43,053 nt of DNA, taken from the NCBI RefSeq assembly GCF_006345805.1, contig NW_021834956.1, positions 1 through 43,053 on the forward strand, given 5' to 3'. The notes below the pieces were generated by a model. That model saw only the letters and a list, made by a program, of their open reading frames with translations. It did no database searches and was not told the DNA's origin. The stretch comes from Octopus sinensis. Lineage: Eukaryota. A program made the translations under genes and the position numbers. Below, in pieces: positions 17,713-42,965 of this stretch (position 1 is the first letter of the stretch; each line of letters begins with the position of its first letter).

Positions 17713-17717
17713 CGCAT

Positions 17718-20700
17718 CGCCAATGGCGGAAAGATGGGAAGAGATGGGATTACGGCTTGAGGTAGCCTAAGGTAAATTTTGTAGAGAGAGAGATAGGAAA
17801 GATAAATCAAGTTATGGCGAAGGCTTGAAAGTAGCCTAAAAGGTTAAATTTTCGTAACAATGTATGAATAAACGTAGTAACAACGAATAAAAATAGTAAG
17901 ATAAATTTTTAAAAACTTGCTGCGGGCATCGATCGGGAGTTGAAATTGAAGAAGAAAGTAAGTTGAATTGGGAATTTAAATTGTAGAATCGTAATGGTAA
18001 TGGCGATTTTCAAGTTTTAGCATAAGAAGAAGAAGAGGAGGAAAAAGACCGCCAATGGCGGAAAGATGGGAAGAGATGGGATTACGGCTTGAGGTAGCCT
18101 AAGGTTAAATTTTGTAGAGAGAGAGATAGGAAAGATAAATCAAGTTATGGCGAAGGCTTGAAAGTAGCCTAAAAGTTAAATTTTCGTAACAATGTATGAA
18201 TAAACGTAGTAACAACGAATAAAAATAGTAAGATAAATTTTTAAAAACTTGCTGCGGGCATCGATCGGGAGTTGAAATTGAAGAAGAAAGTAAGTTGAAT
18301 TGGGAATTTAAATTGTAGAATCGTAATGGTAATGGCGATTTTCAAGTTTTAGCATAAGAAGAAGAAGAGGAGGAAAAAGACCGCCAATGGCGGAAAGATG
18401 GGAAGAGATGGGATTACGGCTTGAGGTAGCCTAAGGTTAAATTTTGTAGAGAGAGAGATAGGAAAGATAAATCAAGTTATGGCGAAGGCTTGAAAGTAGC
18501 CTAAAAGTTTAAATTTTCGTAACAATGTATGAATAAACGTAGTAACAACGAATAAAATAGTAAGATAAATTTTTAAGAACTTGCTGCGGGCATCGATCGG
18601 GAGTTGAAATTGAAGAAGAAAGTAAGTTGAATTGGGAATTTAATTGTAGAATCGTAATGGTAATGGCGATTTTCAAGTTTTAGCATAAGAAGAAGAAGAG
18701 GAGGAAAAAGACCGCCAATGGCGGAAAGATGGGAAGAGATGGGATTACGGCTTGAGGTAGCCTAAGGTTAAATTTTGTAGAGAGAGAGATAGGAAAGATA
18801 AATCAAGTTATGGCGAAGGCTTGAAAGTAGCCTAAAAGTTTAAATTTTCGTAACAATGTATGAATAAACGTAGTAACAACGAATAAAAATAGTAAGATAA
18901 ATTTTTAAGAACTTGCTGCGGGCATCGATCGGAGTTGAAATTGAAGAAGAAAGTAAGTTGAATTGGGAATTTAAATTGTAGAATCGTAATGGTAATGGCG
19001 ATTTTCAAGTTTTAGCATAAGAAGAAGAAGAGGAGGAAAAGACCGCCAATGGCTGAAAGATGGGAAGAGATGGGATTACGGCTTGAGGTAGCCTAAGGTT
19101 AAATTTTGTAGAGAGAGAGATAGGAAAGATAAATCAAGTTATGGCGAAGGCTTGAAAGTAGCCTAAAAGGTTAAATTTTCGTAACAATGTATGAATAAAC
19201 GTAGTAACAACGAATAAAAATAGTAAGATAAATTTTTAAGAACTTGCTGCGGGCATCGATCGGGAGTTGAAATTGAAGAAGAAAGTAAGTTGAATTGGGA
19301 ATTTAAATTGTAGAATCGTAATGGTAATGGCGATTTTCAAGTTTTAGCATAAGAAGAAGAGGAGGAAAAAGACCGCCAATGGCTGAAAGATGGGAAGAGA
19401 TGGGATTACGGCTTGAGGTAGCCTAAGGTTAAATTTTGTAGAGAGAGAGATAGGAAAGATAAATCAAGTTATGGCGAAGGCTTGAAAGTAGCCTAAAAGG
19501 TTAAATTTTCGTAACAATGTATGAATAAACGTAGTAACAACGAATAAAAATAGTAAGATAAATTTTTAAGAACTTGCTGCGGGCATCGACCAGGAGTTGA
19601 AATTGAAGAAGAAAGTAAGTTGAATTGGGAATTTAAATTGTAGAATCGTAATGGTAATGGCGATTTTCAAGTTTTAGCATAAGAAGAAGAAGAGGAGGAA
19701 AAAGACCGCCAATGGCGGAAAGATGGGAAGAGATGGGATTACGGCTTGAGGTAGCCTAAGGTTAAATTTTGTAGAGAGAGAGATAGGAAAGATAAATCAA
19801 GTTATGGCGAAGGCTTGAAAGTAGCCTAAAAGGTTAAATTTTCGTAACAATGTATGAATAAACGTAGTAACAACGAATAAAAATAGTAAGATAAATTTTT
19901 AAAAACTTGCTGCGGGCATCGATCGAGAGTTGAAATTGAAGAAGAAAGTAAGTGAATTGGGAATTTAAATTGTAGAATCGTAATGGTAATGGCGATTTTC
20001 AAGTTTTAGCAAAAAGAAGAAGAGGAAAAACCCGCCAATGGCTGAAAGATGGGAAGAGATGGGATTACGGCTGGAGGTAGCCTAAGGTTAAATTTTGTAG
20101 AGAGAGAGATAGAAAGATAAATCAAGTTATGGCGAAGGCTTGAAAGTAGCCTAAAAGGTTAAATTTTCGTAACAATGTATGAATAAACGTAGTAACAACG
20201 AATAAAAATAGTAAGATAAATTTTTAAAAACTTGCTGCGGGCATCGATCGAGTTGAAATTGAAGAAGAAAGTAAGTTGAATTGGGAATTTAAATTGTAGA
20301 ATCGTAATGGTAATGGCGATTTTCAAGTTTTAGCATAAGAAGAAGAAGAGGAGGAAAAAGACCGCCAATGGCTGAAAGATGGGAAGAGATGGGATTACGG
20401 CTTGAGGTAGCCTAAGGTTAAATTTTGTAGAGAGAGAGATAGGAAAGATAAATCAAGTTATGGCGAAGGCTTGAAAGTAGCCTAAAAGGTTAAATTTTCG
20501 TAACAATGTATGAATAAACGTAGTAACAACGAATAAAAATAGTAATATAATTTTTAAGAACTTGCTGCGGGCATCGATCGGAGTTGAAATTGAAGAAGAA
20601 AGTAAGTTGAATTGGGAATTTAAATTGTAGAATCGTAATGGTAATGGCGATTTTCAAGTTTTAGCATAAGAAGAAGAAGAGGAAAAAGACCGCCAATGGC

Positions 20701-23700
20701 GGAAAGATGGGAAGAGATGGGATTACGGCTTGAGGTAGCCTAAGGTTAAATTTTGTAGAGAAGAGATAGGAAAGATAAATCAAGTTATGGCGAAGGCTTG
20801 AAAGTAGCCTAAAAGGTTAAATTTTCGTAACAATGTATGAATAAACGTAGTAACAACGAATAAAAATAGTAAGATAAATTTTTAGAAACTTGCTGCGGGC
20901 ATCGATCGGGAGTTGAAATTGAAGAAGAAAGTAAGTTGAATTGGGAATTTAAATTGTAGAATCGTAATGGTAATGGCGATTTTCAAGTTTTAGCATAAGA
21001 AGAAGAAGAGGAGGAAAAAGACCGCCAATGGCGGAAAGATGGGAAGAGATGGGATTACGGCTGGAGGTAGCCTAAGGTTAAATTTTGTAGAGAGAGAGAC
21101 AGGAAAGATAAATCAAGTTATGGCGAAGGCTTGAAAGTAGCCTAAAAGGTTAAATTTTCGTAACAATGTATGAATAAACGTAGTAACAACGAATAAAAAT
21201 AGTAATATAAATTATTAAGAACTTGCTGCGGGCATCGATCGGGAGTTGAAATTGAAGAAGAAAGTAAGTTGAATTGGGAATTTAAATTGTAGAATCGTAA
21301 TGGTAATGGCGATTTTCAAGTTTTAGCATAAGAGAAGAAGAGGAAAAAGACCGCCAATGGCGGAAAGATGGGAAGAGATGGGATTACGGCTTGAGGTAGC
21401 CTAAGGTTAAATTTTGTAGAGAGAGAGATAGGAAAGATAAATCAAGTTATGGCGAAGGCTTGAAAGTAGCCTAAAAGGTTAAATTTTCGTAACAATGTAT
21501 GAATAAACGTAGTAACAACGAATAAAATAGTAAGATAAATTTTTAAAACTTGCTGCGGGCATCGATCGGGAGTTGAAATTGAAGAAGAAAGTAAGTTGAA
21601 TTGGGAATTTAAATTGTAGAATCGTAATGGTAATGGCGATTTTCAAGTTTTAGCATAAGAAGAAGAAGAGGAGGAAAAGACCGCCAATGGCGGAAAGATG
21701 GGAAGAGATGGGATTACGGCTTGAGGTAGCCTAAGGTTAAATTTTGTAGAGAGAGAGATAGGAAAGATAAATCAAGTTATGGCGAAGGCTTGAAAGTAGC
21801 CTAAAAGGTTAAATTTTCGTAACAATGTATGAATAAACGTAGTAACAACGAATAAAAATAGTAATATAAATTTTAAGAACTTGCTGCGGGCATCGATCGA
21901 GTTGAAATTGAAGAAGAAAGTAAGTTGAATTGGGAATTTAAATTGTAGAATCGTAATGGTAATGGCGATTTTCAAGTTTTAGCATAAGAAGAAGAAGAGG
22001 AGGAAAAAGACCGCCAATGGCGGAAAGATGGGAAGAGATGGGATTACGGCTTGAGGTAGCCTAAGGTTAAATTTTGTAGAGAGAGAGATAGGAAAGATAA
22101 ATCAAGTTATGGCGAAGGCTTGAAAGTAGCCTAAAAGGTTAAATTTTCGTAACAATGTATGAATAAACGTAGTAACAACGAATAAAATATAGTAAGAATA
22201 AATTTTTAGAACTTGCTGCGGGCATCGATCGGGAGTTGAAATTGAAGAAGAAAGTAAGTTGAATTGGGAATTTAAATTGTAGAATCGTAATGGTAATGGC
22301 GATTTTCAAGTTTTAGCATAAGAAGAAGAAGAGGAGGAAAAAGACCGCCAATGGCGGAAAGATGGGAAGAGATGGGATTACGGCTTGAGGTAGCCTAAGG
22401 TTAAATTTTGTAGAGAGAGAGATAGGAAAGATAATCAAGTTATGGCGAAGGCTTGAAAGTAGCCTAAAAGGTTAAATTTTCGTAACAATGTATGAATAAA
22501 CGTAGTAACAACGAATAAAATAGTAAGATAAATTTTTAAGAACTTGCTGCGGGCATCGATCGGGAGTTGAAATTGAAGAAGAAAGTAAGTTGAATTGGGA
22601 ATTTAAATTGTAGAATCGTAATGGTAATGGCGATTTTCAAGTTTTAGCATAAGAAGAAGAAGAGGAGGAAAAAGACCGCCAATGGCGGAAAGATGGAAGA
22701 GATGGGATTACGGCTTGAGGTAGCCTAAGGTTAAATTTTGTAGAGAGAGAGATAGGAAAGATAAATCAAGTTATGGCGAAGGCTTGAAAGTAGCCTAAAA
22801 GGTTAAATTTTCGTAACAATGTATGAATAAACGTAGTAACAACGAATAAAAAGTAAGATAAATTTTTAAGAACTTGCTGCGGGCATCGATCGGGAGTTGA
22901 AATTGAAGAAGAAAGTAAGTTGAATTGGGAATTTAATTGTAGAATCGTAATGGTAATGGCGATTTTCAAGTTTTAGCATAAGAAGAAGAAGGAGGAAAAA
23001 GACCGCCAATGGCTGAAAGATGGGAAGAGATGGGATTACGGCTTGAGGTAGCCTAAGGTTAAATTTTGTAGAGAGAGAGATAGGAAAGATAAATCAAGTT
23101 ATGGCGAAGGCTTGAAAGTAGCCTAAAAGGTTAAATTTTCGGAACAATGTATGAAGAAACGTAGTAACAACGAATAAAAATAGTAAGATAAATTTTTAAG
23201 AACTTGCTGCGGGCATCGATCGGGAGTTGAAATTGAAGAAGAAAGTAAGTTGAATTGGGAATTTAAATTGTAGAATCGTAATGGTAATGGCGATTTTCAA
23301 GTTTTAGCATAAGAAGAAGAGGAGGAAAAAGACCGCAATGGCTGAAAGATGGGAAGAGATGGGATTACGGCTTGAGGTAGCCTAAGGTTAAATTTTGTAG
23401 AGAGAGAGATAGGAAAGATAAATCAAGTTATGGCGAAGGCTTGAAAGTAGCCTAAAAGGTTAAATTTTCGTAACAATGTATGAATAAACGTAGTAACAAC
23501 GAATAAAAATAGTAATATAATTTTTAAGAACTTGCTGCGGGCATCGATCGGGAGTTGAAATTGAAGAAGAAAGTAAGTTGAATTGGGAATTTAAATTGTA
23601 GAATCGTAATGGTAATGGCGATTTTCATTTCAAGTTTCAGCATAGAAGAAGAGAGGAAAAAGACCGCCAATGGCGGAAAGATGGAAGAGATGGGATTACG

Positions 23701-26700
23701 GCTTGAGGTAGCCTAAGGTTAAATTTTGTAGAGAGAGAGATAGGAAAGATAAATCAAGTTATGGCGAAGGCTTGAAAGTAGCCTAAAAGGTTAAATTTTC
23801 GTAACAATGTATGAATAAACGTAGTAACAACGAATAAAATAGTAAGATAATTTTTAAGAACTTGCTGCGGGCATCGATCGGAGTTGAAATTGAAGAAGAA
23901 AGTAAGTTGAATTGGGAATTTAAATTGCAGAATCGTAATGGTAATGGCGATTTTCAAGTTTTAGCATAAGAAGAAGAAGAGGAGGAAAAAGACCGCCAAT
24001 GGCGGAAAGATGGGAAGAGATGGGATTACGGCTTGAGGTAGCCTAAGGTTAAATTTTGTAGAGAGAGAGATAGGAAAGATAAATCAAGTTATGGCGAAGG
24101 CTTGAAAGTAGCCTAAAAGGTTAAATTTTCGTAACAATGTATGAATAAACGTAGTAACAACGAATAAAATAGTAAGATAAATTTTTAAGAACTTGCTGCG
24201 GGCATCGATCGGAGTTGAAATTGAAGAAGAAAGTAAGTTGAATTGGGAATTTAAATTGTAGAATCGTAATGGTAATGGCGATTTTCAAGTTTTAGCATAA
24301 GAAGAAGAAGAGGAGGAAAAAGACCGCCAATGGCGGAAAGATGGGAAGAGATGGGATTACGGCTTGAGGTAGCCTAAGGTTAAATTTTGTAGAGAGAGAG
24401 AGGAAAGATAAATCAAGTTATGGCGAAGGCTTGAAAGTAGCCTAAAAGGTTAAATTTTCGTAACAATGTATGAATAAACGTAGTAACAACGAATAAAAAG
24501 TAAGATAAATTTTTAAGAACTTGCTGCGGGCATCGATCGGGAGTTGAAATTGAAGAAGAAAGTAAGTTGAATTGGGAATTTAAATTGTAGAATCGTAATG
24601 GTAATGGCGATTTTCAAGTTTTAGCATAAGAAGAAGAGGAGGAAAAGACCGCCAATGGCGGAAAGATGGGAAGAGATGGGATTACGGCTTGAGGTAGCCT
24701 AAGGTTAAATTTTGTAGAGAGAGAGATAGGAAAGATAAATCAAGTTATGGCGAAGGCTTGAAAGTAGCCTAAAGGTTAAATTTTCGTACAATGTATGAAT
24801 AAACGTAGTAACAACGAATAAAAATAGTAAGATAATTTTTAAAACTTGCTGCGCGCATCGATCGGGAGTTGAAATTGAAGAAGAAAGTAAGTTGAATTGG
24901 GAATTTAAATTGTAGAATCGTAATGGTAATGGCGATTTTCAAGTTTTAGCTTAGCAGAAGAAGAAGAGAGGAAAAAGACCGCCAATGGCGGAAAGATGGG
25001 AAGAGATGGGATTACGGCTTGAGGTAGCCTAAGGTTAAATTTTGTAGAGAGAGAGATAGGAAGATAAATCAAGTTATGGCGAAGGCTTGAAAGTAGCCTA
25101 AAAGGTTAAATTTTCGTAACAATGTATGAATAAACGTAGTAACAACGAATAAAATAGTAAGATAAATTTTTAAGAACTTGCTGCGGGCATCGATCGGAGT
25201 TGAAATTGAAGAAGAAAGTAAGTTGAATTGGGAATTTAAATTGTAGAATCGTAATGGTAATGGCGATTTTCAAGTTTTAGCATAAGAAGAAGAGGAGGAA
25301 AAAGACCGCCAATGGCTGAAAGATGGGAAGAGATGGGATTACGGCTTGAGGTAGCCTAAGGTTAAATTTTGTAGAGAGAGAGATAGGAAAGATAAATCAA
25401 GTTATGGCGAAGGCTTGAAAGTAGCCTAAAAGGTTAAATTTTCGTAACAATGTATGAATAAACGTAGTAACAACGAATAAAAATAGTAAGATAAATTTTT
25501 AAGAACTTGCTGCGGGCATCGATCGGGAGTTGAAATTGAAGAAGAAAGTAAGTTGAATTGGGAATTTAAATTGTAGAATCGTAATGGTAATGGCGATTTT
25601 CAAGTTTTAGCATAGAAGAAGAAGAGGAGGAAAAAGACCGCCAATGGCGGAAAGATGGGAAGAGATGGGATTACGGCTTGAGGTAGCCTAAGGTTAAATT
25701 TTGTAGAGAGAGAGATAGGAAAGATAAATCAAGTTATGGCGAAGGCTTGAAAGTAGCCTAAAAGTTTAAATTTTCGTAACAATGTATGAATAAACGTAGT
25801 AACAACGAATAAAAATAGTAAGATAAATTTTTAAGAACTTGCTGCGGGCATCGATCGGGAGTTGAAATTGAAGAAGAAAGTAAGTTGAATTGGGAATTTA
25901 AATTGTAGAATCGTAATGGTAATGGCGATTTTCAAGTTTTAGCATAAGAAGAAGAAGAGGAGGAAAAAGACCGCCAATGGCGGAAAGATGGGAAGAGATG
26001 GGATTACGGCTTGAGGTAGCCTAAGGTTAAATTTTGTAGAGAGAGAGATAGGAAAGATAAATCAAGTTATGGCGAAGGCTTGAAAGTAGCCTAAAAGTTA
26101 AATTTTCGTAACAATGTATGAATAAACGTAGTAACAACGAATAAAAATAGTAATATAATTTTTAAGAACTTGCTGCGGGCATCGATCGGAGTTGAAATTG
26201 AAGAAGAAAGTAAGTTGAATTGGGAATTTAATTGTAGAATCGTAATGGTAATGGCGATTTTCAAGTTTTAGCATAAAGAAGAAGAGGAGGAAAAAGACGC
26301 CAATGGCGGAAAGATGGGAAGAGATGGGATTACGGCTTGAGGTAGCCCTAAGTTTAATTTTGTAGAGAGAGAGATAGGAAAGATAAATCAAGTTATGGCG
26401 AAGGCTTGAAAGTAGCCTAAAAGGTTAAATTTTCGTAACAATGTATGAATAAACGTAGTAACAACGAATAAAAATAGTAAGATAAATTTTTAAGAACTTG
26501 CTGCGGGCATCGATCGGGAGTTGAAATTGAAGAAGAAAGTAAGTTGAATTGGGAATTTAAATTGTAGAATCGTAATGGTAATGGCGATTTTCAAGTTTTA
26601 GCATAAGAAGAAGAAGAGGAGGAAAAAGACCGCCAATGGCGGAAAGATGGGAAGAGATGGGATTACGGCTTGAGGTAGCCTAAGGTTAAATTTTGTAGAG

Positions 26701-29700
26701 AGAGAGATAGGAAAGATAAATCAAGTTATGGCGAAGGCTTGAAAGTAGCCTAAAAGGTTAAATTTTCGTAACAATGTATGAATAAACGTAGTAACAACGA
26801 ATAAAAATAGTAAGATAAATTTTTAAGAACTTGCTGCGGGCATCGATCGGGAGTTGAAATTGAAGAAGAAAGTAAGTTGAATTGGGAATTTAAATTGTAG
26901 AATCGTAATGGTAATGGCGATTTTCAAGTTTTAGCATAAGAAGAAGAGGAGGAAAAGACCGCCAATGGCGGAAAGATGGGAAGAGATGGGATTACGGCTT
27001 GAGGTAGCCTAAGGTTAAATTTTGTAGAGAGAGAGATAGGAAAGATAAATCAAGTTATGGCGAAGGCTTGAAAGTAGCCTAAAAGGTTAAATTTTCGTAA
27101 CAATGTATGAATAAACGTAGTAACAACGAATAAAAATAGTAAGATAAATTTTTAAGAACTTGCTGCGGGCATCGATCGGAGTTGAAATTGAAGAAGAAAG
27201 TAAGTTGAATTGGGAATTTAAATTGTAGAATCGTAATGGTAATGGCGATTTTCAAGTTTTAGCATAAGAAGAAGAAGAGGAGAAAAAGACCGCCAATGGC
27301 GGAAAGATGGGAAGAGATGGGATTACGGCTTGAGGTAGCCTAAGGTTAAATTTTGTAGAGAGAGAGATAGGAAAGATAAATCAAGTTATGGCGAAGGCTT
27401 GAAAGTAGCCTAAAAGGTTAAATTTTCGTAACAATGTATGAATAAACGTAGTAACAACGAATAAAATAGTAAATATAAATTTTAAGAACTTGCTGCGGGC
27501 ATCGATCGGGAGTTGAAATTGAAGAAGAAAGTAAGTTGAATTGGGAATTTAAATTGTAGAATCGTAATGGTAATGGCGATTTTCAAGTTTTAGCATAAGA
27601 AGAAGAAGAGGAGGAAAAGACCGCCAATGGCGAAAGATGGGAAGAGATGGGATTACGGCTTGAGGTAGCCTAAGGTTAAATTTTGTAGAGAGAGAGATAG
27701 GAAAGATAAATCAAGTTATGGCGAAGGCTTGAAAGTAGCCTAAAGGTTAAATTTTCGTAACAATGTATGAATAAACGTAGTAACAACGAATAAAAATAGT
27801 AATAAATTTTTAAGAACTTGCTGCGGGCATCGATCGGGAGTTGAAATTGAAGAAGAAAGTAAGTTGAATTGGGAATTTAAATTGTAGAATCGTAATGGTA
27901 ATGGCGATTTTCAAGTTTTAGCATAAGAAGAAAAGAGGAAAAAGACCGCCAATGGCGAAAGATGGGAAGAGATGGGATTACGGCTTGAGGTAGCCTAAGG
28001 TTAAATTTTGTAGAGAGAGAGATAGGAAAGATAAATCAAGTTATGGCGAAGGCTTGAAAGTAGCCTAAAAGGTTAAATTTTCGTAACAATGTATGAATAA
28101 ACGTAGTAACAACGAATAAAAATAGTAAGATAAATTTTTAAGAACTTGCTGCGGGCATCGATCGGGAGTTGAAATTGAAGAAGAAAGTAAGTTGAATTGG
28201 GAATTTAAATTGTAGAATCGTAATGGTAATGGCGATTTTCAAGTTTTAGCATAAGAAGAAGAAGAGGAGGAAAAGACCGCCAATGGCGGAAAGATGGGAA
28301 GAGATGGGATTACGGCTTGAGGTAGCCTAAGGTTAAATTTTGTAGAGAGAGAGATAGGAAAGATAAATCAAGTTATGGCGAAGGCTTGAAAGTAGCCTAA
28401 AAGGTTAAATTTTCGTAACAATGTATGAATAAACGTAGTAACAACGAATAAAAATAGTAATATAAATTTTTAAGAACTTGCTGCGGGCATCGATCGGGAG
28501 TTGAAATTGAAGAAGAAAGTAAGTTGAATTGGGAATTTAAATTGTAGAATCGTAATGGTAATGGCGATTTTCAAGTTTTAGCATAAGAAGAAGAGGAGGA
28601 AAAAGACCGCCAATGGCGGAAAGATGGGAAGAGATGGGATTACGGCTTGAGGTAGCCTAAGGTTAAATTTTGTAGAGAGAGAGATAGGAAAGATAAATCA
28701 AGTTATGGCGAAGGCTTGAAAGTAGCCTAAAAGGTTAAATTTTCGTAACAATGTATGAATAAACGTAGTAACAACGAATAAAAATAGTAAGATAAATTTT
28801 TAAAAACTTGATGCGCGCATCGATCGGGAGTTGAAATTGAAGAAGAAAGTAAGTTGAATTGGGAATTTAAATTGTAGAATCGTAATGGTAATGGCGATTT
28901 TCAAGTTTTAGCATAAGAAGAAGAAGAGGAGGAAAAAGACCGCCAATGGCTGAAAGATGGGAAGAGATGGGATTACGGCTTGAGGTAGCCTAAGGTTAAA
29001 TTTTGTAGAGAGAGAGATAGGAAAGATAAATCAAGTTATGGCGAAGGCTTGAAAGTAGCCTAAAAGGTTAAATTTTCGTAACAATGTATGAATAAACGTA
29101 GTAACAACGAATAAAAATAGTAAGATAAATTTTTAAGAACTTGCTGCGGGCATCGATCGGGAGTTGAAATTGAAGAAGAAAGTAAGTTGAATTGGGAATT
29201 TAAATTGTAGAATCGTAATGGTAATGGCGATTTTCAAGTTTTAGCATAAAGAAGAGGAGGAAAAACCGCCAATGGCGGAAAGATGGGAAGAGATGGGATT
29301 ACGGCTTGAGGTAGCCTAAGGTTAAATTTTGTAGAGAGAGAGATAGGAAAGATAAATCAAGTTATGGCGAAGGCTTGAAAGTAGCCTAAAAGGTTAAATT
29401 TTCGTAACAATGTATGAATAAACGTAGTAACAACGAATAAAAATAGTAAGATAAATTTTTAAGAACTTGCTGCGGGCATCGATCGGGAGTTGAAATTGAA
29501 GAAGAAAGTAAGTTGAATTGGGAATTTAAATTGTAGAATCGTAATGGTAATGGCGATTTTCAAGTTTTAGCATAAGAAGAAGAAGAGGAGGAAAAACCGC
29601 CAATGGCGAAAGATGGGAAGAGATGGGATTACGGCTTGAGGTAGCCTAAGGTTAAATTTGTAGAGAGAGAGATAGGAAAGATAAATCAAGTTATGGCGAA

Positions 29701-32700
29701 GGCTTGAAAGTAGCCTAAAAGGTTAAATTTTCGTAACAATGTATGAATAAACGTAGTAACAACAACGAATAAAATAGTAATAAATTTTTAGAAACTTGCT
29801 GCGGGCATCGATCGGAGTTGAAATTGAAGAAGAAAGTAGTTGAATTGGGAATTTAAATTGTAGAATCGTAATGGTAATGGCGATTTTCAAGTTTTAGCAT
29901 AAGAAGAAGAAGAGGAGGAAAAAGACCGCCAATGGCGGAAAGATGGGAAGAGATGGGATTACGGCTTGAGGTAGCCTAAGGTTAAATTTTGTAGAGAGAG
30001 AGATAGGAAAGATAAATCAAGTTATGGCGAAGGCTTGAAAGTAGCCTAAAAGGTTAAATTTTCGTAACAATGTATGAATAAACGTAGTAACAACGAATAA
30101 AAATAGTAATATAAGTTATTAAGAACTTGCTGCGGGCATCGATCGGGAGTTGAAATTGAAGAAGAAAGTAAGTTGAATTGGGAATTTAAATTGTAGAATC
30201 GTAATGGTAATGGCGATTTTCAAGTTTTAGCATAAGAAGAAGAGGAGGAAAAAAGACCGCCAATGGCGGAAAGATGGGAAGAGATGGGATTACGGCTTGA
30301 GGTAGCCTAAGGTTAAATTTTGTAGAGAGAGAGATAGGAAAGATAAATCAAGTTATGGCGAAGGCTTGAAAGTAGCCTAAAGGTTAAATTTTCGTAACAA
30401 TGTATGAATAAACGTAGTAACAACGAATAAAAATAGTAAGATAAATTTTTAAGAACTTGCTGCGGGCATCGATCGGGAGTTGAAATTGAAGAAGAAAGTA
30501 AGTTGAATTGGGAATTTAAATTGTAGAATCGTAATGGTAATGGCGATTTTCAAGTTTTAGCATAAGAAGAAGAAGAGGAGGAAAAAGACCGCCAATGGCT
30601 GAAAGATGGGAAGAGATGGGATTACGGCTTGAGGTAGCCTAAGGTTAAATTTTGTAGAGAGAGAGATAGGAAAGATAAATCAAGTTATGGCGAAGGCTTG
30701 AAAGTAGCCTAAAAGGTTAAATTTTCGTAACAATGTATGAATAAACGTAGTAACAACGAATAAAAATAGTAAGATAAATTTTTAAGAACTTGCTGCGGGC
30801 ATCGATCGGGATTGAAATTGAAGAAGAAAGTAAGTTGAATTGGGAATTTAAATTGTAGAATCGTAATGGTAATGGCGATTTTCAAGTTTTAGCATAAGAG
30901 AAGAGGAGGAAAAAGACCGCCAATGGCGGAAAGATGGGAAGAGATGGGATTACGGCTTGAGGTAGCCTAAGGTTAAATTTTGTAGAGAGAGAGATAGGAA
31001 AGATAAATCAAGTTATGGCGAAGGCTTGAAAGTAGCCTAAAAGGTTAAATTTTCGTAACAATGTATGAATAAACGTAGTAACAACGAATAAAATAGTAAT
31101 AGATTTTTAAGAACTTGCTGCGGGCATCGATCGGGAGTTGAAATTGAAGAAGAAAGTAAGTTGAATTGGGAATTTAAATTGTAGAATCGTAATGGTAATG
31201 GCGATTTTCAAGTTTTAGCATAAGAAGAAGAAGAGGAGGAAAAAGACCGCCAATGGCGGAAAGATGGGAAGAGATGGGATTACGGCTTGAGGTAGCCTAA
31301 GGTTAAATTTTGTAGAGAGAGAGATAGGAAAGATAAATCAAGTTATGGCGAAGGCTTGAAAGTAGCCTAAAAGGTTAAATTTTCGTAACAATGTATGAAT
31401 AAACGTAGTAACAACGAATAAAAATAGTAAGATAAATTTTTAGAAACTTGCTGCGGGCATCGATCGGGAGTTGAAATTGAAGAAGAAAGTAAGTTGAATT
31501 GGGAATTTAAATTGTAGAATCGTAATGGTAATGGCGATTTTCAAGTTTTAGCATAAGAAGAAGAGGAGGAAAAAGACCGCCAATGGCGGAAAGATGGGAA
31601 GAGATGGGATTACGGCTTGAGGTAGCCTAAGGTTAAATTTTGTAGAGAGAGAGATAGGAAAGATAAATCAAGTTATGGCGAAGGCTTGAAGTAGCCTAAA
31701 AGGTTAAATTTCGTAACAATGTATGAATAAACGTAGTAACAACGAATAAAATAGTAAGATAAATTTTTAAGAACTTGCTGCGGGCATCGATCGGGAGTTG
31801 AAATTGAAGAAGAAAGTAAGTTGAATTGGGAATTTAAATTGTAGAATCGTAATGGTAATGGCGATTTTCAAGTTTTAGCATAAGAAGAAGAAGAGGAGGA
31901 AAAGACCGCCAATGGCGGAAAGATGGGAAGAGATGGATTACGGCTGGAGGTAGCCTAAGGTTAAATTTTGTAGAGAGAGAGAGGAAAGATAAATCAAGTT
32001 ATGGCGAAGGCTTGAAAGTAGCCTAAAAGGTTAAATTTTCGTAACAATGTATGAATAAACGTAGTAACAACGAATAAAAATAGTAATATAATTTTTAAGA
32101 ACTTGCTGCGGGCATCGATCGGGAGTTGAAATTGAAGAAGAAAGTAAGTTGAATTGGGAATTTAAATTGTAGAATCGTAATGGTAATGGCGATTTTCAAG
32201 TTTTAGCATAAGAAGAAGAGGAGGAAAAAGACCGCCAATGGCGAAAGATGGGAAGAGATGGGATTACGGCTTGAGGTAGCCTAAGGTTAAATTTTGTAGA
32301 GAGAGAGATAGGAAAGATAAATCAAGTTATGGCGAAGGCTTGAAAGTAGCCTAAAAGGTTAAATTTTCGTAACAATGTATGAATAAACGTAGTAACAACG
32401 AATAAAAATAGTAAGATAAATTTTTAAGAACTTGCTGCGGGCATCGATCGGAGTTGAAATTGAAGAAGAAAGTAAGTTGAATTGGGAATTTAAATTGTAG
32501 AATCGTAATGGTAATGGCGATTTTCAAGTTTTAGCATAAGAAGAAGAAGAGGAGGAAAAAGACCGCCAATGGCTGAAAGATGGGAAGAGATGGGATTACG
32601 GCTTGAGGTAGCCTAAGGTTAAATTTTGTAGAGAGAGAGATAGGAAAGATAAATCAAGTTATGGCGAAGGCTTGAAAGTAGCCTAAAAGGTTAAATTTTC

Positions 32701-35700
32701 GTAACAATGTATGAATAAACGTAGTAACAACGAATAAAAATAGTAAGATAAATTTTAAGAACTTGCTGCGGGCATCGATCGGGAGTTGAAATTGAAGAAG
32801 AAAGTAAGTTGAATTGGGAATTTAAATTGTAGAATCGTAATGGTAATGGCGATTTTCAAGTTTTAGCATAAGAAGAAGAGGAAAAAGACCGCCAATGGCG
32901 GAAAGATGGGAAGAGATGGGATTACGGCTTGAGGTAGCCTAAGGTTAAATTTTGTAGAGAGAGAGATAGGAAAGATAAATCAAGTTATGGCGAAGGCTTG
33001 AAAGTAGCCTAAAAGGTTAAATTTTCGTAACAATGTATGAATAAACGTAGTAACAACGAATAAAAATAGTAAGATAAATTTTTTTTAAGAACTTGCTGCG
33101 GGCATCGATCGGGAGTTGAAATTGAAGAAGAAAGTAAGTTGAATTGGGAATTTAAATTGCAGAATCGTAATGGTAATGGCGATTTTCAAGTTTTAGCATA
33201 AGAAGAAGAAGAGGAGGAAAAAGACCGCCAATGGCGGAAAGATGGGAAGAGATGGGATTACGGCTTGAGGTAGCCTAAGGTTAAATTTTGTAGAGAGAGA
33301 GATAGGAAAGATAAATCAAGTTATGGCGAAGGCTTGAAAGTAGCCTAAAAGGTTTAATTTTCGTAACAATGTATGAATAAACGTAGTAACAACGAATAAA
33401 AATAGTAAGATAAATTTTTAAGAACTTGCTGCGGGCATCGATCGGGAGTTGAAATTGAAGAAGAAAGTAAGTTGAATTGGGAATTTAAATTGTAGAATCG
33501 TAATGGTAATGGCGATTTTCAAGTTTTAGCATAAAGAAGAAGAGGAGGAAAAACCGCCAATGGCGGAAAGATGGGAAGAGATGGGATTACGGCTTGAGGT
33601 AGCCTAAGGTTAAATTTTGTAGAGAGAGAGATAGGAAAGATAAATCAAGTTATGGCGAAGGCTTGAAAGTAGCCTAAAAGGTTAAATTTTCGTAACAATG
33701 TATGAATAAACGTAGTAACAACGAATAAAAATAGTAAGATAAATTTTAAGAACTTGCTGCGGGCATCGATCGGGAGTTGAAATTGAAGAAGAAAGTAAGT
33801 TGAATTGGGAATTTAAATTGTAGAATCGTAATGGTAATGGCGATTTTCAAGTTTTAGCATAAGAAGAAGAGGAGGAAAAAGACCGCCAATGGCTGAAAGA
33901 TGGGAAGAGATGGGATTACGGCTTGAGGTAGCCTAAGGTTAAATTTTGTAGAGAGAGAGATAGGAAAGATAAATCAAGTTATGGCGAAGGCTTGAAAGTA
34001 GCCTAAAAGGTTAAATTTTCGTAACAATGTATGAATAAACGTAGTAACAACGAATAAAATAGTAAGATATTTTTAAGAACTTGCTGCGGGCATCGATCGG
34101 GAGTTGAAATTGAAGAAGAAAGTAAGTTGAATTGGGAATTTAAATTGTAGAATCGTAATGGTAATGGCGATTTTCAAGTTTTAGCATAAGAAGAAGAAGA
34201 GGAGGAAAAAGACCGCCAATGGCGGAAAGATGGGAAGAGATGGGATTACGGCTTGAGGTAGCCTAAGGTTAATTTTTGAGAGAGAGATAGGAAAGATAAA
34301 TCAAGTTATGGCGAAGGCTTGAAAGTAGCCTAAAAGGTTAAATTTTCGTAACAATGTATGAATAAACGTAGTAACAACGAATAAAAATAGTAAGATAAAT
34401 TTTTAAGAACTTGCTGCGGGCATCGATCGGGAGTTGAAATTGAAGAAGAAGAAGTTGAATTGGGAATTTAAATTGTAGAATCGTAATGGTAATGGCGATT
34501 TTCAAGTTTTAGCATAAGGAGAGGAGGAAAAAGACCGCCAATGGCTGAAAGATGGGAAGAGATGGGATTACGGCTTGAGGTAGCCTAAGGTTAAATTTTG
34601 TAGAGAGAGAGATAGGAAAGATAAATCAAGTTATGGCGAAGGCTTGAAAGTAGCCTAAAAGGTTAAATTTTCGTAACAATGTATGAATAAACGTAGTAAC
34701 AACGAATAAAATAGTAAGATAAATTTTTAAGAACTTGCTGCGGGCATCGATCGGGAGTTGAAATTGAAGAAGAAAGTAAGTTGAATTGGGAATTTAAATT
34801 GTAGAATCGTAATGGTAATGGCGATTTTCAAGTTTTAGCATAAGAAGAAGAAGAGGAGGAAAAACCGCCAATGGCGGAAAGATGGGAGAGATGGGATTAC
34901 GGCTTGAGGTAGCCTAAGGTTAAATTTTGTAGAGAGAGAGATAGGAAAGATAAATCAAGTTATGGCGAAGGCTTGAAAGTAGCCTAAAAGGTTAAATTTT
35001 CGTAACAATGTATGAAAACGTAGTAACAACGAATAAAAATAGTAAGATAAATTTTTAAGAACTTGCTGCGGGCATCGATCGGGAGTTGAAATTGAAGAAG
35101 AAATGTTGAATTGGGAATTTAAATTGTAGAATCGTAATGGTAATGGCGATTTTCAAGTTTTAGCATAAGAAGAAGAGAGGAAAAAGACCGCCAATGGCTG
35201 AAAGATGGGAAGAGATGGGATTACGGCTTGAGGTAGCCTAAGGTTAAATTTTGTAGAGAGAGAGATAGGAAAGATAAATCAAGTTATGGCGAAGGCTTGA
35301 AAGTAGCCTAAAAGGTTAAATTTTCGTAACAATGTATGAATAAACGTAGTAACAACGAATAAAAATAGTAAGATAAATTTTAAGAACTTGCTGCGGGCAT
35401 CGATCGGAGTTGAAATTGAAGAAGAAAGTAAGTTGAATTGGGAATTTAAATTGTAGAATCGTAATGGTAATGGCGATTTTCAAGTTTTAGCATAAGAAGA
35501 AGAAGAGGAGGAAAAGACCGCCAATGGCGGAAAGATGGGAAGAGATGGGATTACGGCTTGAGGTAGCCTAAGGTTAAATTTTGTAGAGAGAGAGATAGGA
35601 AAGATAAATCAAGTTATGGCGAAGGCTTGAAAGTAGCCTAAAAGGTTAAATTTTCGTAACAATGTATGAATAAACGTAGTAACAACGAATAAAAATAGTA

Positions 35701-38700
35701 AGATAAATTTTTAAGAACTTGCTGCGGGCATCGATCGGGAGTTGAAATTGAAGAAGAAAGTAAGTTGAATTGGGAATTTAAATTGTAGAATCGTAATGGT
35801 AATGGCGATTTTCAAGTTTTAGCATAAGAAGAGAAGAGGAGGAAAAAGACCGCCAATGGCGGAAAGATGGGAAGAGATGGGATTACGGCTTGAGGTAGCC
35901 TAAGGTTAATTTTGTAGAGAGAGAGATAGGAAAGATAAATCAAGTTATGGCGAAGGCTTGAAAGTAGCCTAAAAGTTTAAATTTTCGTAACAATGTATGA
36001 ATAAACGTAGTAACAACGAATAAAAATAGTAAGATAAATTTTTAAGAACTTGCTGCGGGCATCGATCGGGAGTTGAAATTGAAGAAGAAAGTAAGTTGAA
36101 TTGGGAATTTAAATTGTAGAATCGTAATGGTAATGGCGATTTTCAAGTTTTAGCATAAGAAGAAGAAGAGGAGGAAAAAGACCGCCAATGGCGGAAAGAT
36201 GGGAAGAGATGGGATTACGGCTTGAGGTAGCCTAAGGTTAATTTTGTAGAGAGAGAGATAGGAAAGATAAATCAAGTTATGGCGAAGGCTTGAAAGTAGC
36301 CTAAAAGTTTAAATTTTCGTAACAATGTATGAATAAACGTAGTAACAACGAATAAAAATAGTAAGATAAATTTTAAGAACTTGCTGCGGGCATCGATCGG
36401 AGTTGAAATTGAAGAAGAAAGTAAGTTGAATTGGGAATTTAAATTGTAGAATCGTAATGGTAATGGCGATTTTCAAGTTTTAGCATAAGAAGAAGAAGAG
36501 GAGGAAAAAGACCGCCAATGGCTGAAAGATGGGAAGAGATGGGATTACGGCTTGAGGTAGCCTAAGGTTAAATTTTGTAGAGAGAGAGATAGGAAAGATA
36601 AATCAAGTTATGGCGAAGGCTTGAAAGTAGCCTAAAAGGTTAAATTTTCGTAACAATGTATGAATAAACGTAGTAACAACGAATAAAAATAGTAAGATAA
36701 ATTTTTAAGAACTTGCTGCGGGCATCGATCGGGAGTTGAAATTGAAGAAGAAAGTAAGTTGAATTGGGAATTTAAATTGTAGAATCGTAATGGTAATGGC
36801 GATTTTCAAGTTTTAGCATAAGAAGAAGAGGAGGAAAAACCGCCAATGGCGAAAGATGGAAGAGATGGGATTACGGCTTGAGGTAGCCTAAGGTTAAATT
36901 TTGTAGAGAGAGATAGGAAAGATAAATCAAGTTATGGCGAAGGCTTGAAAGTAGCCTAAAAGGTTAAATTTTCGTAACAATGTATGAATAAACGTAGTAA
37001 CAACGAATAAAAATAGTAAGATAAATTTTTAAGAACTTGCTGCGGGCATCGACCAGGAGTTGAAATTGAAGAAGAAAGTAAGTTGAATTGGGAATTTAAA
37101 TTGCAGAATCGTAATGGTAATGGCGATTTTCAAGTTTTAGCATAAGAAGAAGAAGAGGGTGAAAAAAGACCGCCAATGGCGGAAAGATGGGAAGAGATGG
37201 GATTACGGCTTGAGGTAGCCTAAGGTTAAATTTTGTAGAAAGAGAGATAGGAAAGATAAATCAAGTTATGGCGAAGGCTTGAAAGTAGCCTAAAAGGTTA
37301 AATTTTCGTAACAATGTATGAATAAACGTAGTAACAACGAATAAAAATAGTAAGATAAATTTTTAAAACTTGCTGCGCGCATCGATCGGAGTTGAAATTG
37401 AAGAAGAAAGTAAGTTGAATTGGGAATTTAAATTGTAGAATCGTAATGGTAATGGCGATTTTCAAGTTTTAGCATAAGAAGAAGAAGAGGAGGAAAAAGA
37501 CCGCCAATGGCTGAAAGATGGGAAGAGATGGGATTACGGCTGGAGGTAGCCTAAGGTTAAATTTTGTAGAGAGAGAGATAGGAAAGATAAATCAAGTTAT
37601 GGCGAAGGCTTGAAAGTAGCCTAAAAGTTTAAATTTTCGTAACAATGTATGAATAAACGTAGTAACAACGAATAAAAATAGTAAGATAAATTTTTAAGAA
37701 CTTGCTGCGGGCATCGATCGGGAGTTGAAATTGAAGAAGAAAGTAAGTTGAATTGGGAATTTAAATTGTAGAATCGTAATGGTAATGGCGATTTTCAAGT
37801 TTTAGCATAAGAAAAAGAGGAGGAAAAGACCGCCAATGGCGAAAGATGGGAAGAGATGGGATTACGGCTTGAGGTAGCCTAAGGTTAATTTTGTAGAGAG
37901 AGAGATAGGAAAGATAAATCAAGTTATGGCGAAGGCTTGAAAGTAGCCTAAAAGTTTAAATTTTCGTAACAATGTATGAATAAACGTAGTAACAACGAAT
38001 AAAAATAGTAAGATAAATTTTTAAGAACTTGCTGCGGGCATCGATCGGGAGTTGAAATTGAAGAAGAAAGTAAGTTGAATTGGGAATTTAAATTGTAGAA
38101 TCGTAATGGTAATGGCGATTTTCAAGTTTTAGCATAAGAAGAAGAGGAGGAAAAAGACCGCCAATGGCGGAAAGATGGGAAGATGGGATTACGGCTTGAG
38201 GTAGCCTAAGGTTAAATTTTGTAGAGAGAGAGATAGGAAAGATAAATCAAGTTATGGCGAAGGCTTGAAAGTAGCCTAAAAGTTTAAATTTTCATAACAA
38301 TGTATGAATAAACGTAGTAACAACGAATAAAAATAGTAAGATAAATTTTTAAGAACTTGCTGCGGGCATCGATCGGGAGTTGAAATTGAAGAAGAAAGTA
38401 AGTTGAATTGGGAATTTAAATTGTAGAATCGTAATGGTAATGGCGATTTTCAAGTTTTAGCATAAGAAGAAGAAGAGGAGGAAAAAGACCGCCAATGGCT
38501 GAAAGATGGGAAGAGATGGGATTACGGCTTGAGGTAGCCTAAGGTTAAATTTTGTAGAGAGAGAGATAGGAAAGATAAATCAAGTTATGGCGAAGGCTTG
38601 AAAGTAGCCTAAAAGGTTAAATTTTCGTAACAATGTATGAATAAACGTAGTAACAACGAATAAAAATAGTAAGATAAATTTTTAAGAACTTGCTGCGGCA

Positions 38701-41700
38701 TCGATCGGGAGTTGAAATTGAAGAAGAAAGTAAGTTGAATTGGGAATTTAAATTGTAGAATCGTAATGGTAATGGCGATTTTCAAGTTTTAGCATAAGAA
38801 GAAGAGGAGGAAAAAGACCGCCAATGGCTGAAAGATGGGAGAGATGGGATTACGGCTTGAGGTAGCCTAAGGTTAAATTTTGTAGAGAGAGAGATAGGAA
38901 AGATAAATCAAGTTATGGCGAAGGCTTGAAAGTAGCCTAAAAGGTTAAATTTTCGTAACAATGTATGAATAAACGTAGTAACAATAATAAAATAGTAAGA
39001 TAAATTTTTAAGAACTTGCTGCGGGCATCGATCGGGAGTTGAAATTGAAGAAGAAAGTAAGTTGAATTGGGAATTTAAATTGTAGAATCGTAATGGTAAT
39101 GGCGATTTTCAAGTTTTAGCATAAGAAGAAGAAGAGGAGGAAAAAGACCGCCAATGGCGGAAAGATGGGAAGAGATGGGATTACGGCTTGAGGTAGCCTA
39201 AGGTTAAATTTTGTAGAGAGAGAGATAGGAAGATAAATCAAGTTATGGCGAAGGCTTGAAAGTAGCCTAAAAGGTTAAATTTTCGTAACAATGTATGAAT
39301 AAACGTAGTAACAACGAATAAAAATAGTAAGATAAATTTTTAAAACTTGCTGCGCGCATCGATCGGGAGTTGAAATTGAAAGAAAGTAAGTTGAATTGGG
39401 AATTTAAATTGTAGAATCGTAATGGTAATGGCGATTTTCAAGTTTTAGCATAAGAAGAAGAAGAGGAGGAAAAAGACCGCCAATGGCTGAAAGATGGGAA
39501 GAGATGGGATTACGGCTGGAGGTAGCCTAAGGTTAAATTTTGTAGAGAGAGAGATAGGAAAGATAAATCAAGTTATGGCGAAGGCTTGAAAGTAGCCTAA
39601 AAGGTTAAATTTTCGTAACAATGTATGAATAAACGTAGTAACAACGAATAAAAATAGTAATATAAATTTTTAAGAACTTGCTGCGGGCATCGATCGGGAG
39701 TTGAAATTGAAGAAGAAAGTAAGTTGAATTGGGAATTTAAATTGTAGAATCGTAATGGTAATGGCGATTTTCAAGTTTTAGCATAAGAAGAAGAAGAGGA
39801 GGAAAAACCGCCAATGGCGAAAGATGGGAAGAGATGGGATTACGGCTTGAGGTAGCCTAAGGTTAAATTTTGTAGAGAGAGAGATAGGAAAGATAAATCA
39901 AGTTATGGCGAAGGCTTGAAAGTAGCCTAAAAGGTTAAATTTTCGTAACAATGTATGAATAAACGTAGTAACAACGAATAAAAATAGTAAGATAAATTTT
40001 TAAGAACTTGCTGCGGGCATCGATCGGGAGTTGAAATTGAAGAAGAAAGTAAGTTGAATTGGGAATTTAAATTGTAGAATCGTAATGGTAATGGCGATTT
40101 TCAAGTTTTAGCATAAGAAGAAGAAGAGGAGGAAAACCGCCAATGGCGGAAAGATGGGAAGAGATGGGATTACGGCTGAGGTAGCCTAAGTTAAATTTTG
40201 TAGAGAGAGAGCAGGAAAGATAAATCAAGTTATGGCGAAGGCTTGAAAGTAGCCTAAAAGGTTAAATTTTCGTAACAATGTATGAATAAACGTAGTAACA
40301 ACGAATAAAAATAGTAAGATAAATTTTTAAGAACTTGCTGCGGGCATCGATCGGGAGTTGAAATTGAAGAAGAAAGTAAGTTGAATTGGGAATTTAAATT
40401 GTAGAATCGTAATGGTAATGGCGATTTTCAAGTTTTAGCATAAGAAGAAGAAGAGGAGGAAAAAGACCGCCAATGGCGGAAAGATGGGAAGAGATGGGAT
40501 TACGGCTTGAGGTAGCCTAAGGTTAAATTTTGTAGAGAGAGAGATAGGAAAGATAAATCAAGTTATGGCGAAGGCTTGAAAGTAGCCTAAAAGGTTAAAT
40601 TTTCGTAACAATGTATGAATAAACGTAGTAACAACGAATAAAAATAGTAAGATAAATTTTTAAGAACTTGCTGCGGGCATCGATCGGGAGTTGAAATTGA
40701 AGAAGAAAGTAAGTTGAATTGGGAATTTAAATTGTAGAATCGTAATGGTAATGGCGATTTTCAAGTTTTAGCATAAGAAGAAGAGGAGGAAAAAGACCGC
40801 CAATGGCGAAAATGGGAAGGAGATGGGATTACGGCTTGAGGTAGCCTAAGGTTAAATTTTGTAGAGAGAGAGATAGGAAAGATAAATCAAGTTATGGCGA
40901 AGGCTTGAAAGTAGCCTAAAAGGTTAAATTTTCGTAACAATGTATGAATAAACGTAGTAACAACGAATAAAAATAGTAAGATAAATTTTTAAGAACTTGC
41001 TGCGGGCATCGATCGGGAGTTGAAATTGAAGAAGAAGTAAGTTGAATTGGGAATTTAAATTGTAGAATCGTAATGGTAATGGCGATTTTCAAGTTTTAGC
41101 ATAAGAAGAAGAGGAGGAGGAAAAGACCGCCAATGGCGAAAGATGGGAAGAGATGGGATTACGGCTTGAGGTAGCCTAAGGTTAATTTTGTAGAGAGAGA
41201 GATAGGAAAGATAAATCAAGTTATGGCGAAGGCTTGAAAGTAGCCTAAAAGTTTAAATTTTCGTAACAATGTATGAATAAACGTAGTAACAACGAATAAA
41301 AATAGTAAGATAAATTTTTAAGAACTTGCTGCGGGCATCGATCGGGAGTTGAAATTGAAGAAGAAAGTAAGTTGATTGGGAATTTAAATTGTAGAATCGT
41401 AATGGTAATGGCGATTTTCAAGTTTTAGCATAAGAAGAAGAGAGGAAAAAGACCGCCAATGGCGGAAAGATGGGAAGAAATGGGATTACGGCTTGAGGTA
41501 GCCTAAGGTTAAATTTTGTAGAGAGAGAGATAGGAAAGATAAATCAAGTTATGGCGAAGGCTTGAAAGTAGCCTAAAAGGTTAAATTTTCGTAACAATGT
41601 ATGAATAAACGTAGTAACAACGAATAAAAATAGTAAGATAAATTTTTAAGAACTTGCTGCGGGCATCGATCGGAGTTGAAATTGAAGAAGAAAGTAAGTT

Positions 41701-42965
41701 GAATTGGGAATTTAAATTGTAGAATCGTAATGGTAATGGCGATTTTCAAGTTTTAGCATAAGAAGAAGAGAGGAGGAAAAAGACCGCCAATGGCGGAAAG
41801 ATGGAAGAGATGGGATTACGGCTTGAGGTAGCCTAAGGTTAAATTTTGTAGAGAGAGAGATAGGAAAGATAAATCAAGTTATGGCGAAGGCTTGAAAGTA
41901 GCCTAAAAGGTTAAATTTTCGTAACAATGTATGAATAAACGTAGTAACAACGAATAAAAATAGTAATATAAATTTTTAAGAACTTGCTGCGGGCATCGAT
42001 CGGGAGTTGAAATTGAAGAAGAAAGTAAGTTGAATTGGGAATTTAAATTGTAGAATCGTAATGGTAATGGCGATTTTCAAGTTTTAGCATAAGAAGAAGA
42101 AGAGGAGGAAAAAGACCGCCAATGGCTGAAAGATGGGAAGAGATGGGATTACGGCTTGAGGTAGCCTAAGGTTAAATTTTGTAGAGAGAGAGATAGGAAA
42201 GATAAATCAAGTTATGGCGAAGGCTTGAAAGTAGCCTAAAAGGTTAAATTTTCGGAACAATGTATGAAGAAACGTAGTAACAACGAATAAAAATAGTAAG
42301 ATAAATCTTTAAGAACTTGCTGCGGGCATCGATCGGGAGTTGAAATTGAAGAAGAAAGTAAGTTGAATTGGGAATTTAAATTGTAGAATCGTAATGGTAA
42401 TGGCGATTTTCAAGTTTTAGCATAAGAAGAAGAGGAGGAAAAAGACCGCCAATGGCTGAAAGATGGGAAGAGATGGGATTACGGCTTGAGGTAGCCTAAG
42501 GTTAAATTTTGTAGAGAGAGAGATAGGAAAGATAAATCAAGTTATGGCGAAGGCTTGAAAGTAGCCTAAAAGGTTAAATTTTCGTAACAATGTATGAATA
42601 AACGTAGTAACAACGAATAAAAATAGTAAGATAGATTTTTAAGAACTTGCTGCGGGCATCGATCGGGAGTTGAAATTGAAGAAGAAAGTAAGTTGAATTG
42701 GGAATTTAAATTGTAGAATCGTAATGGTAATGGCGATTTTCAAGTTTTAGCATAAGAAGAAGAAGAGGAGGAAAAAGACCGCCAATGGCGGAAAGATGGG
42801 AAGAGATGGATTACGGCTTGAGGTAGCCTAAGGTTAATTTTGTAGAGAGAGAGATAGGAAAGATAATCAAGTTATGGCGAAGGCTTGAAAGTAGCCTAAA
42901 AGGTTAAATTTTCGTAACAATGTATGAATAAACGTAGTAACAACGAATAAAAATAGTAATATAAT
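17718..42965. repeat. Satellite-like tandem array, ~331-bp monomer, ~76.5 copies head-to-tail
   Basis: 77 counted occurrences of the GCCAATGG anchor (two with a 1-bp indel) from 17719 to 42781, spaced ~322-334 bp. No insertion or inversion seen. Confidence 0.99.

Follow-up and report, generated by a model that had tools for sequence, protein, structure and literature searches.

How does a homogeneous tandem array of 25 kb come to lie in an octopus gene region, how old is it, and does it serve any function? These questions are raised by a 43,053-bp stretch of Octopus sinensis DNA (NW_021834956.1), which is an entire unplaced contig and is referred to here as the window. An initial annotation of the letters alone had described about 76.5 head-to-tail copies of a ~331-bp monomer extending over 25 kb. 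Tandem Repeats Finder (TRF) and a consensus check bore this out, placing the array at 17718-42964 (25.2 kb; period 330, 76.6 copies, 97% matches, 2% indels). After weighing the structure of the array, its flanks and related loci, we consider it probable, with somewhat better than even confidence, that the array represents satellite-type DNA of recent origin, either selectively neutral or selfish, and that it forms a macrosatellite-like locus that expanded in place in O. sinensis.

The tandem structure and its homogeneity are directly observed. Splitting the array on the anchor CGCCAATGG defined 77 units, comprising 76 full units and a final one of ~185 bp, with lengths of 322-336 bp, mostly 329-332. 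A BLAST search with the 333-nt consensus gave 77 matches, all on the plus strand, and the 76 full-length ones averaged 98.6% identity (95.8-100%). No foreign insert and no inverted unit interrupts the array, in agreement with the initial claim that substitutions are few and that insertions and inversions are absent. Relative to the consensus, substitution cells amount to ~1.1% and indel columns to ~1.05%, and substitutions drop to ~0.5% once the GAA/GAG tract of variable length at the end of the unit is excluded. Because 76 of the 125 deletion cells lie within or beside homopolymers, part of the variation among units is probably long-read consensus error. Variants shared between units are irregularly scattered, with a few local block duplications in addition (e.g. 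units 58-61 and 64-67), a pattern compatible with repeated unequal exchange. No higher-order period was detected in the array, where the mean pairwise distance between units is flat with lag. Edge decay was likewise not found; units 1-3 carry one substitution each and are as near to the consensus as the middle units. A hidden 165-bp dimer or another internal period was rejected, as circular autocorrelation stayed within the shuffle null. The sole internal repeat is a duplicated motif of ~30 bp (GGCTTGA..GTAGCCTAA..GGTTAAATTTT) at unit positions ~37 and ~106, and there is a small stem GGCT...AGCC.

The monomer is AT-rich, contains short palindromes and is strongly asymmetric between the strands. 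The array consists of 39.5% A, 26.7% G, 24.9% T and 8.9% C, and the purine-rich plus strand reported earlier is confirmed by 66% purines and a GC skew of +0.50 over the entire array. Each unit carries one polypurine tract of ~25 nt (AAGAAGAAGAAGAGGAGGAAAAAGA). As an addition to the earlier description, we found that the purine and G skew begins ~700 bp upstream of the array, at ~17046, in minisatellites of 18, 24 and 33 bp; this leader (17046-17717) has 40.6% G and 65% purines. As a separate observation, the three commonest shared substitutions, at unit positions 11, 127 and 184 (20, 9 and 10 units, respectively), are all G-to-T on the purine-rich strand, and G-to-T changes account for 42 of the 126 substitution cells in the array. 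Either mutation biased toward one strand or the spreading of just a few variants could explain this excess.

The array is non-coding. Each of the six frames of the consensus contains several stops per unit, so the earlier statement that no frame stays open around the unit stands, and a coding repeat of the mucin or silk type is ruled out with all frames closed. Open reading frames (ORFs) in the array are mostly 34-36 aa long (commonest, 34 aa), and the longest, of 97 aa, was created by indels. Nor did the array match any known RNA family. Rfam searches with E-values up to 10 returned only noise in the array, the archaeal sR52 model reaching 20.9-25.7 bits against a gathering score of 50, and ARAGORN predicted 0 tRNAs. 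With no Rfam or ARAGORN match and no ORF of histone size, an array of RNA genes or other tandem genes (ribosomal DNA, 5S, tRNA, small nuclear RNA or histone) was rejected, and the initial annotation had judged likewise that the monomer resembles none of these. Non-coding monomers arranged head to tail in one orientation over tens of kilobases are the structure of satellite DNA, and this is the structure of the array.

Where the array came from is best seen by comparison with five loci (L001-L005; Table 1), which were obtained via paralogous MIB2-like proteins and together provide ~200 kb of related Octopus sequence. Window positions 1-16771 are collinear with L003 from Octopus vulgaris at 94-97% identity. 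The left alignment stops at L003 25300, and the right flank of the array (42959-43047) matches L003 25308-25217 at 93.5%; both flanks thus meet in one (TA)n tract of L003, which reads ...(TA)n AGGGAGAATTCAC.... The flanks are joined likewise in L004 (95.3% identity on the left; 42967-43047 against 26878-26797 at 97.6% on the right), where the (TA)n contains only a palindromic element of ~230 bp that resembles a miniature inverted-repeat transposable element (MITE). L001 and L002 are collinear with L003 across the site. Relative to these loci, the window has ~26.2 kb of extra DNA (16772 to ~42960) inside a (TA)n microsatellite, and this DNA is an insertion because L003 and L004 join the left and right flanks of the array directly within (TA)n. 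The same intronic (TA)n therefore exists in three states, carrying a SINE-like (short interspersed nuclear element-like) repeat plus the array in the window (16603-16771), nothing in L003 (25300-25460) and the MITE-like element in L004 (26880-27260), and the tract is an insertion hotspot. L005 stops ~0.5 kb before the equivalent of the insertion site and is therefore uninformative there, and assembly breaks may recur at the (TA)n tract.

The related loci share ~95-97% identity with the window and with one another, the non-coding sequence between copies being ~96% identical, and the insertion is specific either to this paralogue or to the species. The flanks of the window and the ~200 kb of related sequence contain neither the monomer nor the G-rich leader, although so small a sample tells little about the genome at large. 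An origin from the window's own flanks was rejected, since BLAST and nhmmer searches of them with the consensus gave no match.

The array appears to be young. Units diverge by 0.5-1%, far below the 3-5% between related loci. In a published calibration, a Jukes-Cantor distance of 0.065 corresponds to ~18 million years (PMC13282606), and the consensus divergence of 0.5-1% suggests an age of at most a few million years, a figure that is an upper bound because the divergence includes sequencing error. CpG dinucleotides are retained in the array, with an observed/expected ratio of 1.51 compared with 0.59 in the flank, which is compatible with a young array. The recent amplification that the initial annotation had proposed is thus supported by the absence of the array from related loci with an intact empty site, by the CpGs kept and by the lack of edge decay.

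The initial annotation had further suggested a structural, heterochromatic or non-coding RNA role, and our data gave no support for any of these or for a centromeric role. Gene-region sequence lies on both sides of the array, and the predicted RNA fold was no better than that of dinucleotide shuffles on either strand (z = -0.80 and -0.06). No CENP-B-box-like motif was seen by eye, no motif tool having been used. A functional non-coding locus could be a source of PIWI-interacting RNA or long non-coding RNA, or a cis-regulatory or triplex-forming element with the ~25-nt polypurine tract as its candidate motif. The strong strand asymmetry, the presence of the tract in each unit and the kept CpGs would fit such a locus. 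However, its RNA stability does not exceed that of shuffled sequence, Rfam offers no match, and the array is missing from the related loci and is therefore not conserved, so that we regard a functional locus as highly improbable.

The insertion is not made up of the array alone. From left to right, it contains a SINE-like repeat, a G-rich minisatellite stretch of ~670 bp and the 331-bp array. The SINE-like repeat, which we call no more than "SINE-like" because ARAGORN finds no tRNA head, adjoins the (TA)n tract with its (GAT)9 tail, and its 5' part is missing or has diverged past ~17038. Copies with 82-87% identity occur in L001 (two), L002 and L003, and one of those in L001 (33654-33882) likewise has its tail against (TA)n. 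By eye, the 18-bp minisatellite GGGTACTTTGGGGATCC (17050-17109) is similar to the segment that comes next in longer SINE-like copies (GGTACTGGCATCGGCTAC in L001), and the minisatellite may be an expanded piece of the SINE-like element. At the other end, the last unit of the array stops internally, at about unit position 185.

We examined which kind of mobile element could leave such ends. No inverted match of at least 9 nt was found between the ends of the insert. A Helitron or an element with terminal inverted repeats was rejected, as terminal inverted repeats of at least 9 nt are lacking, the (GAT)n tail of the SINE-like repeat forms the left end, and CTRR is missing from the right end (...AATAGTAA). 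The search for a target-site duplication returned nothing beyond TA-rich matches (ATATAATA) set off from the junction, such as chance alone would produce within (TA)n. Ends of the retroelement type are present, namely a 3' tail, (ATC)9, at the boundary and a stop of the array at an arbitrary point of the unit. A polyadenylation site at the right end, where AATAAA lies 11-12 nt before the array end, was rejected and the motif judged a chance occurrence, because there are two AATAAA per unit, so that by a rough estimate ~13% of unit positions would qualify, and no A tail follows.

These ends raise a rival explanation, in which the insert is a composite, SINE-tailed non-long-terminal-repeat retroelement, either similar to SVA/LAVA or a non-autonomous derivative of a long interspersed nuclear element (LINE) with tandem 5' monomers. 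Viewed from the minus strand, its layout would be 5'-array, C-rich minisatellites, SINE-like 3' part, (GAT)n-3'. Its RNA would have been reverse-transcribed into the (TA)n from the (GAT)n tail and 5'-truncated within a monomer, and the repeat would have ballooned later. The position of the (GAT)n tail exactly at the (TA)n junction, with the L001 copy arranged in the same way, speaks for this course, as does the arbitrary stop of the far end within a monomer, which resembles 5' truncation. Additionally, the SINE-like body is cut or has diverged ~60-100 bp short of the longest copies, and the equal purine skew of the leader and the array (65% and 66%) suggests one unit. SINEs account for 11.6% of the O. 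vulgaris genome, and insertions of recently active LINEs and SINEs have been reported (PMC13282606). However, no second copy of the architecture occurs in the flanks of the window or in the ~200 kb from L001-L005, the TA-rich surroundings make the target-site duplication unreadable, and two independent insertions at the hotspot would give an equal layout. The array would also be T/C-rich in the sense orientation of the SINE, an uncommon composition for a retroelement's sense strand. Moreover, 26 kb far exceeds known retrotransposition products, so expansion in place would be needed even under this explanation. We therefore consider a composite retroelement unlikely. The more specific idea that the insert is a single mobile cephalopod composite retroelement, whose SINE-derived 3' end lets LINE machinery copy satellite transcripts into (TA)n tracts, strikes us as a long shot. 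If it were true, it would represent a route that seeds new satellite arrays in gene-rich octopus regions, caught just after one seed had reached 25 kb.

The array could instead be the edge or an outlying block of an abundant heterochromatic (pericentromeric or subtelomeric) Octopus satellite. The word "satellite" never appears in the main text of the 2026 repeat annotation of O. vulgaris (PMC13282606); its Table S1 lists "Satellite" as a total only, with 87.5 Mb, 3.12% of the genome and 80 families, and on this view the 331-bp monomer would be one of these 80. Its length, its AT-richness with short palindromes and its homogeneity are typical of such a satellite, and the unplaced contig breaks right after the array. 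In contrast, the sequences on both sides, within 26 kb, are homologous to one genic locus, which makes the array an interstitial block rather than the margin of a megabase-sized domain. Higher-order repeat structure, as stated above, is absent. Searches of broad collections were also empty. An exact 33-mer and a degenerate motif had no match in metagenome contigs, the degenerate motif had none in prokaryote genomes and viral contigs, and a plasmid search for the repeat found none, although all these collections cover octopus DNA poorly and are poor proxies for it. Array-derived peptides had no match among 5.8 billion proteins, and exact look-ups of the 34-aa and 58-aa array ORFs gave none either. 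On balance, the edge or an outlying block of an abundant heterochromatic family has, in our view, only a small chance of being the right description.

The possibility of an assembly artefact must be considered as well, in which the repeat itself would be real but its length, or its join to this locus, would have been generated as the assembler passed through the (TA)n tract, the SINE-like element and the array. Low-complexity TA sequence is found at both junctions, only 89 bp separate the array from the end of this unplaced contig, and the abundance of indels at homopolymers points to a long-read consensus that was incompletely polished. As the title of Li et al. 2020 (a reference of PMC13282606) states, PacBio and Hi-C data went into the O. 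sinensis assembly. However, the 89-bp right flank is exactly the expected sequence (93.5% and 97.6% identity to L003 and L004), which a random misjoin would not give, and the units are not identical copies but show irregular shared variants. An artefact is thus very unlikely.

Overall, we favor an array of satellite-type DNA that expanded in place, and we provide a putative course of events. A short seed of the 331-bp unit would have arrived at, or arisen in, the insertion-prone (TA)n tract. Unequal sister-chromatid exchange or replication slippage would then have amplified this seed and kept it uniform in place; alternatively, a rolling-circle copy made before integration might have provided the amplification. 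The array would have no sequence-specific function, and its main effect would be the splitting of the RING-Death exons of the neighboring MIB2-like gene from any upstream ANK exons.

Several points weigh against this explanation. The array could be one of an abundant genome-wide satellite, in which case the term "single-locus" would change and the term "satellite" would not. A single retrotransposition of a composite element would likewise be expected to leave the SINE-like tail precisely at the left junction. The related loci are so similar (~95-97%) that a true orthologue among them is not assignable, and the length of the array rests on one unplaced, PacBio-based contig that ends shortly past it. 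Finally, the lack of function is inferred solely from a lack of signals.

The effect on the gene is suggested by the position of the insertion. In the gene models of the paralogues, the insertion site falls in the intron upstream of the last ANK exon of the MIB2-like gene. In the window, the (TA)n tract lies ~1.7 kb upstream of the annotated start of LOC115231070, the annotated coding sequence (CDS) begins only at 15086, and the contig stops before any upstream ANK exon could appear. Because the site is intronic in the paralogues and the CDS here begins only at 15086, the RING-Death part may have been cut off. The insertion, judging from this arrangement, may separate the RING-Death exons from any upstream ANK exons, and this is perhaps why the annotated gene starts where it does.

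Table 1. Features of the window, in order of position, and the loci used for comparison.
Feature	Position in window	Strand	Basis or description
LOC115231070, context gene	4426-15086	-	CDS exons 15086-15066, 11032-10892, 9048-8995, 6612-6544, 4623-4426; XP_029657020.1 maps at 100%
(TA)n microsatellite, target tract left of the insertion	16603-16771		TRF; collinearity with L003 and L004 until 16771/16772
SINE-like dispersed repeat, (GAT)9 tail read as (ATC)9 at 16772-16797	16772-17038	-	82-87% copies in L001-L003
18-bp minisatellite GGGTACTTTGGGGATCC, 3.4 copies	17050-17109	+	TRF
G-rich, purine-rich unique sequence	17110-17516	+	No match in L001-L005
G-rich minisatellites, 24-bp (2 copies) and 33-bp (~4.6 copies)	17517-17719	+	TRF, sequence; lead straight into the first monomer
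331-bp (330-333 bp) non-coding monomer array	17718-42964	+	TRF, anchor split, BLAST; 76 full and 1 partial copies
Right junction (TA remnant ATATAATA) and 89-bp right flank to the contig end	42959-43053		L003 93.5%, L004 97.6%
L001, L002, L005			Other O. sinensis contigs (L005 = VCDQ01007368.1)
L003			O. vulgaris scaffold CATOCA020000001.1, 11.07-11.11 Mb
L004			O. vulgaris scaffold CATOCA020000001.1, 4.87-4.94 Mb

Several known systems resemble the octopus array by structure. It shares with classical animal satellites the head-to-tail, AT-rich, non-coding monomers of a few hundred base pairs, the high identity, the short palindromes and the A-tracts, whereas its purine/pyrimidine asymmetry (66%) is unusually strong. 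Interstitial satellite arrays exist in euchromatin, for example the Drosophila 1.688/359-bp satellite and Tribolium TCAST, and similar to these, the octopus array measures tens of kilobases and has genic sequence on its flanks. The human macrosatellites, or large variable number tandem repeats (VNTRs), D4Z4, DXZ4 and RS447 have units of several kilobases. The octopus array is comparable to them in being long, very homogeneous, located in or next to a gene, possibly confined to a single locus and probably variable in copy number, but its unit measures 0.33 kb instead of several kilobases and has no ORF.

Mobile elements with tandem repeats offer further parallels. SVA and LAVA are composite retrotransposons with an internal VNTR, and mouse L1 is a LINE with tandem 5' monomers. 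With these, the insert shares a 3' module derived from a SINE and ending in a simple-repeat tail at the boundary, an internal tandem module and an arbitrary 5' end; unlike them, it is about ten times longer, is not known in further copies, has no readable target-site duplication and bears a (GAT)n tail instead of poly(A). Similar to a mollusc tandem repeat linked to a mobile element, the 331-bp repeat lies within an insertion and is physically joined to a mobile element. It differs in having neither terminal inverted repeats of at least 9 nt nor Helitron-type ends, and in that its partner is SINE-like.

A full-text literature search with four 19- to 22-mers of the monomer returned 0 papers, and no individually described octopus or cephalopod satellite was found in the searchable literature. 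The monomer may well be one of the 80 satellite families annotated in O. vulgaris. The array is a new, or at least undescribed, example of ordinary satellite-type DNA that shows no sign of a new mechanism or a new kind of biology. Its value lies in being a clean example, since both junctions and the empty site in related copies are available for a recent 26-kb gain in a gene cluster, and in its link to a SINE-like element. A 25-kb array can arise recently within such a cluster, its site being a (TA)n tract in which SINE-like and MITE-like insertions accumulate as well. The locus should serve as a marker of array-length polymorphism and of gaps in octopus assemblies, and should help in asking how satellites are seeded.

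The left 17.7 kb of the window is animal DNA. Microsatellites of the (TA)n and (ACAT)n types are numerous in it, and it contains a RING-finger exon together with decayed pieces of reverse transcriptase and Tc1-like elements. The gene LOC115231070 encodes a short MIB2-like RING-Death protein (XP_029657020.1, isoform X2), which maps to the minus strand of the window with 100% identity in five CDS exons, and its RING domain was recognized as zf-C3HC4_3 (E = 4e-9). Used as a protein query, the concatenated candidate exons matched only "E3 ubiquitin-protein ligase MIB2-like" proteins of O. sinensis and O. vulgaris. The O. sinensis contigs that were reached via relatives of this protein are part of GCA_006345805.1. 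Short MIB2-like genes of the ANK-RING-Death type form a large family in Octopus (4426-15245 on the minus strand of the window, and L001-L005), and 51 of 51 matches came from Octopus. Many members of this family sit on a single 12-Mb scaffold of O. vulgaris, and the copy in the window is annotated without N-terminal ANK exons.

Debris of mobile elements was observed in the introns of this gene, at 7505-7768 (minus strand), 11467-11694 (plus strand) and 13455-14036 (minus strand). It comprises an RVT_1 fragment (E = 8.7e-7), Tc1-like transposase fragments and an ORF resembling the C-terminal tail of a LINE, which had no homologue in a word-indexed protein search. The left end of the window contains a tandem duplication of ~1.3 kb (1-2583; 1-1308 against 1278-2583, 96.2% identity), which is single-copy in L001 of O. 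sinensis. Each duplicate carries a palindromic MITE-like element of ~225 bp (1031-1253 and 2303-2527), and these elements are 86-87% identical to the element in the (TA)n of L004. A further palindrome, a near-perfect hairpin of ~140 bp, lies at 5764-5905 and gave sub-threshold matches to Rfam microRNA models on both strands; it is probably a foldback or MITE-type element.

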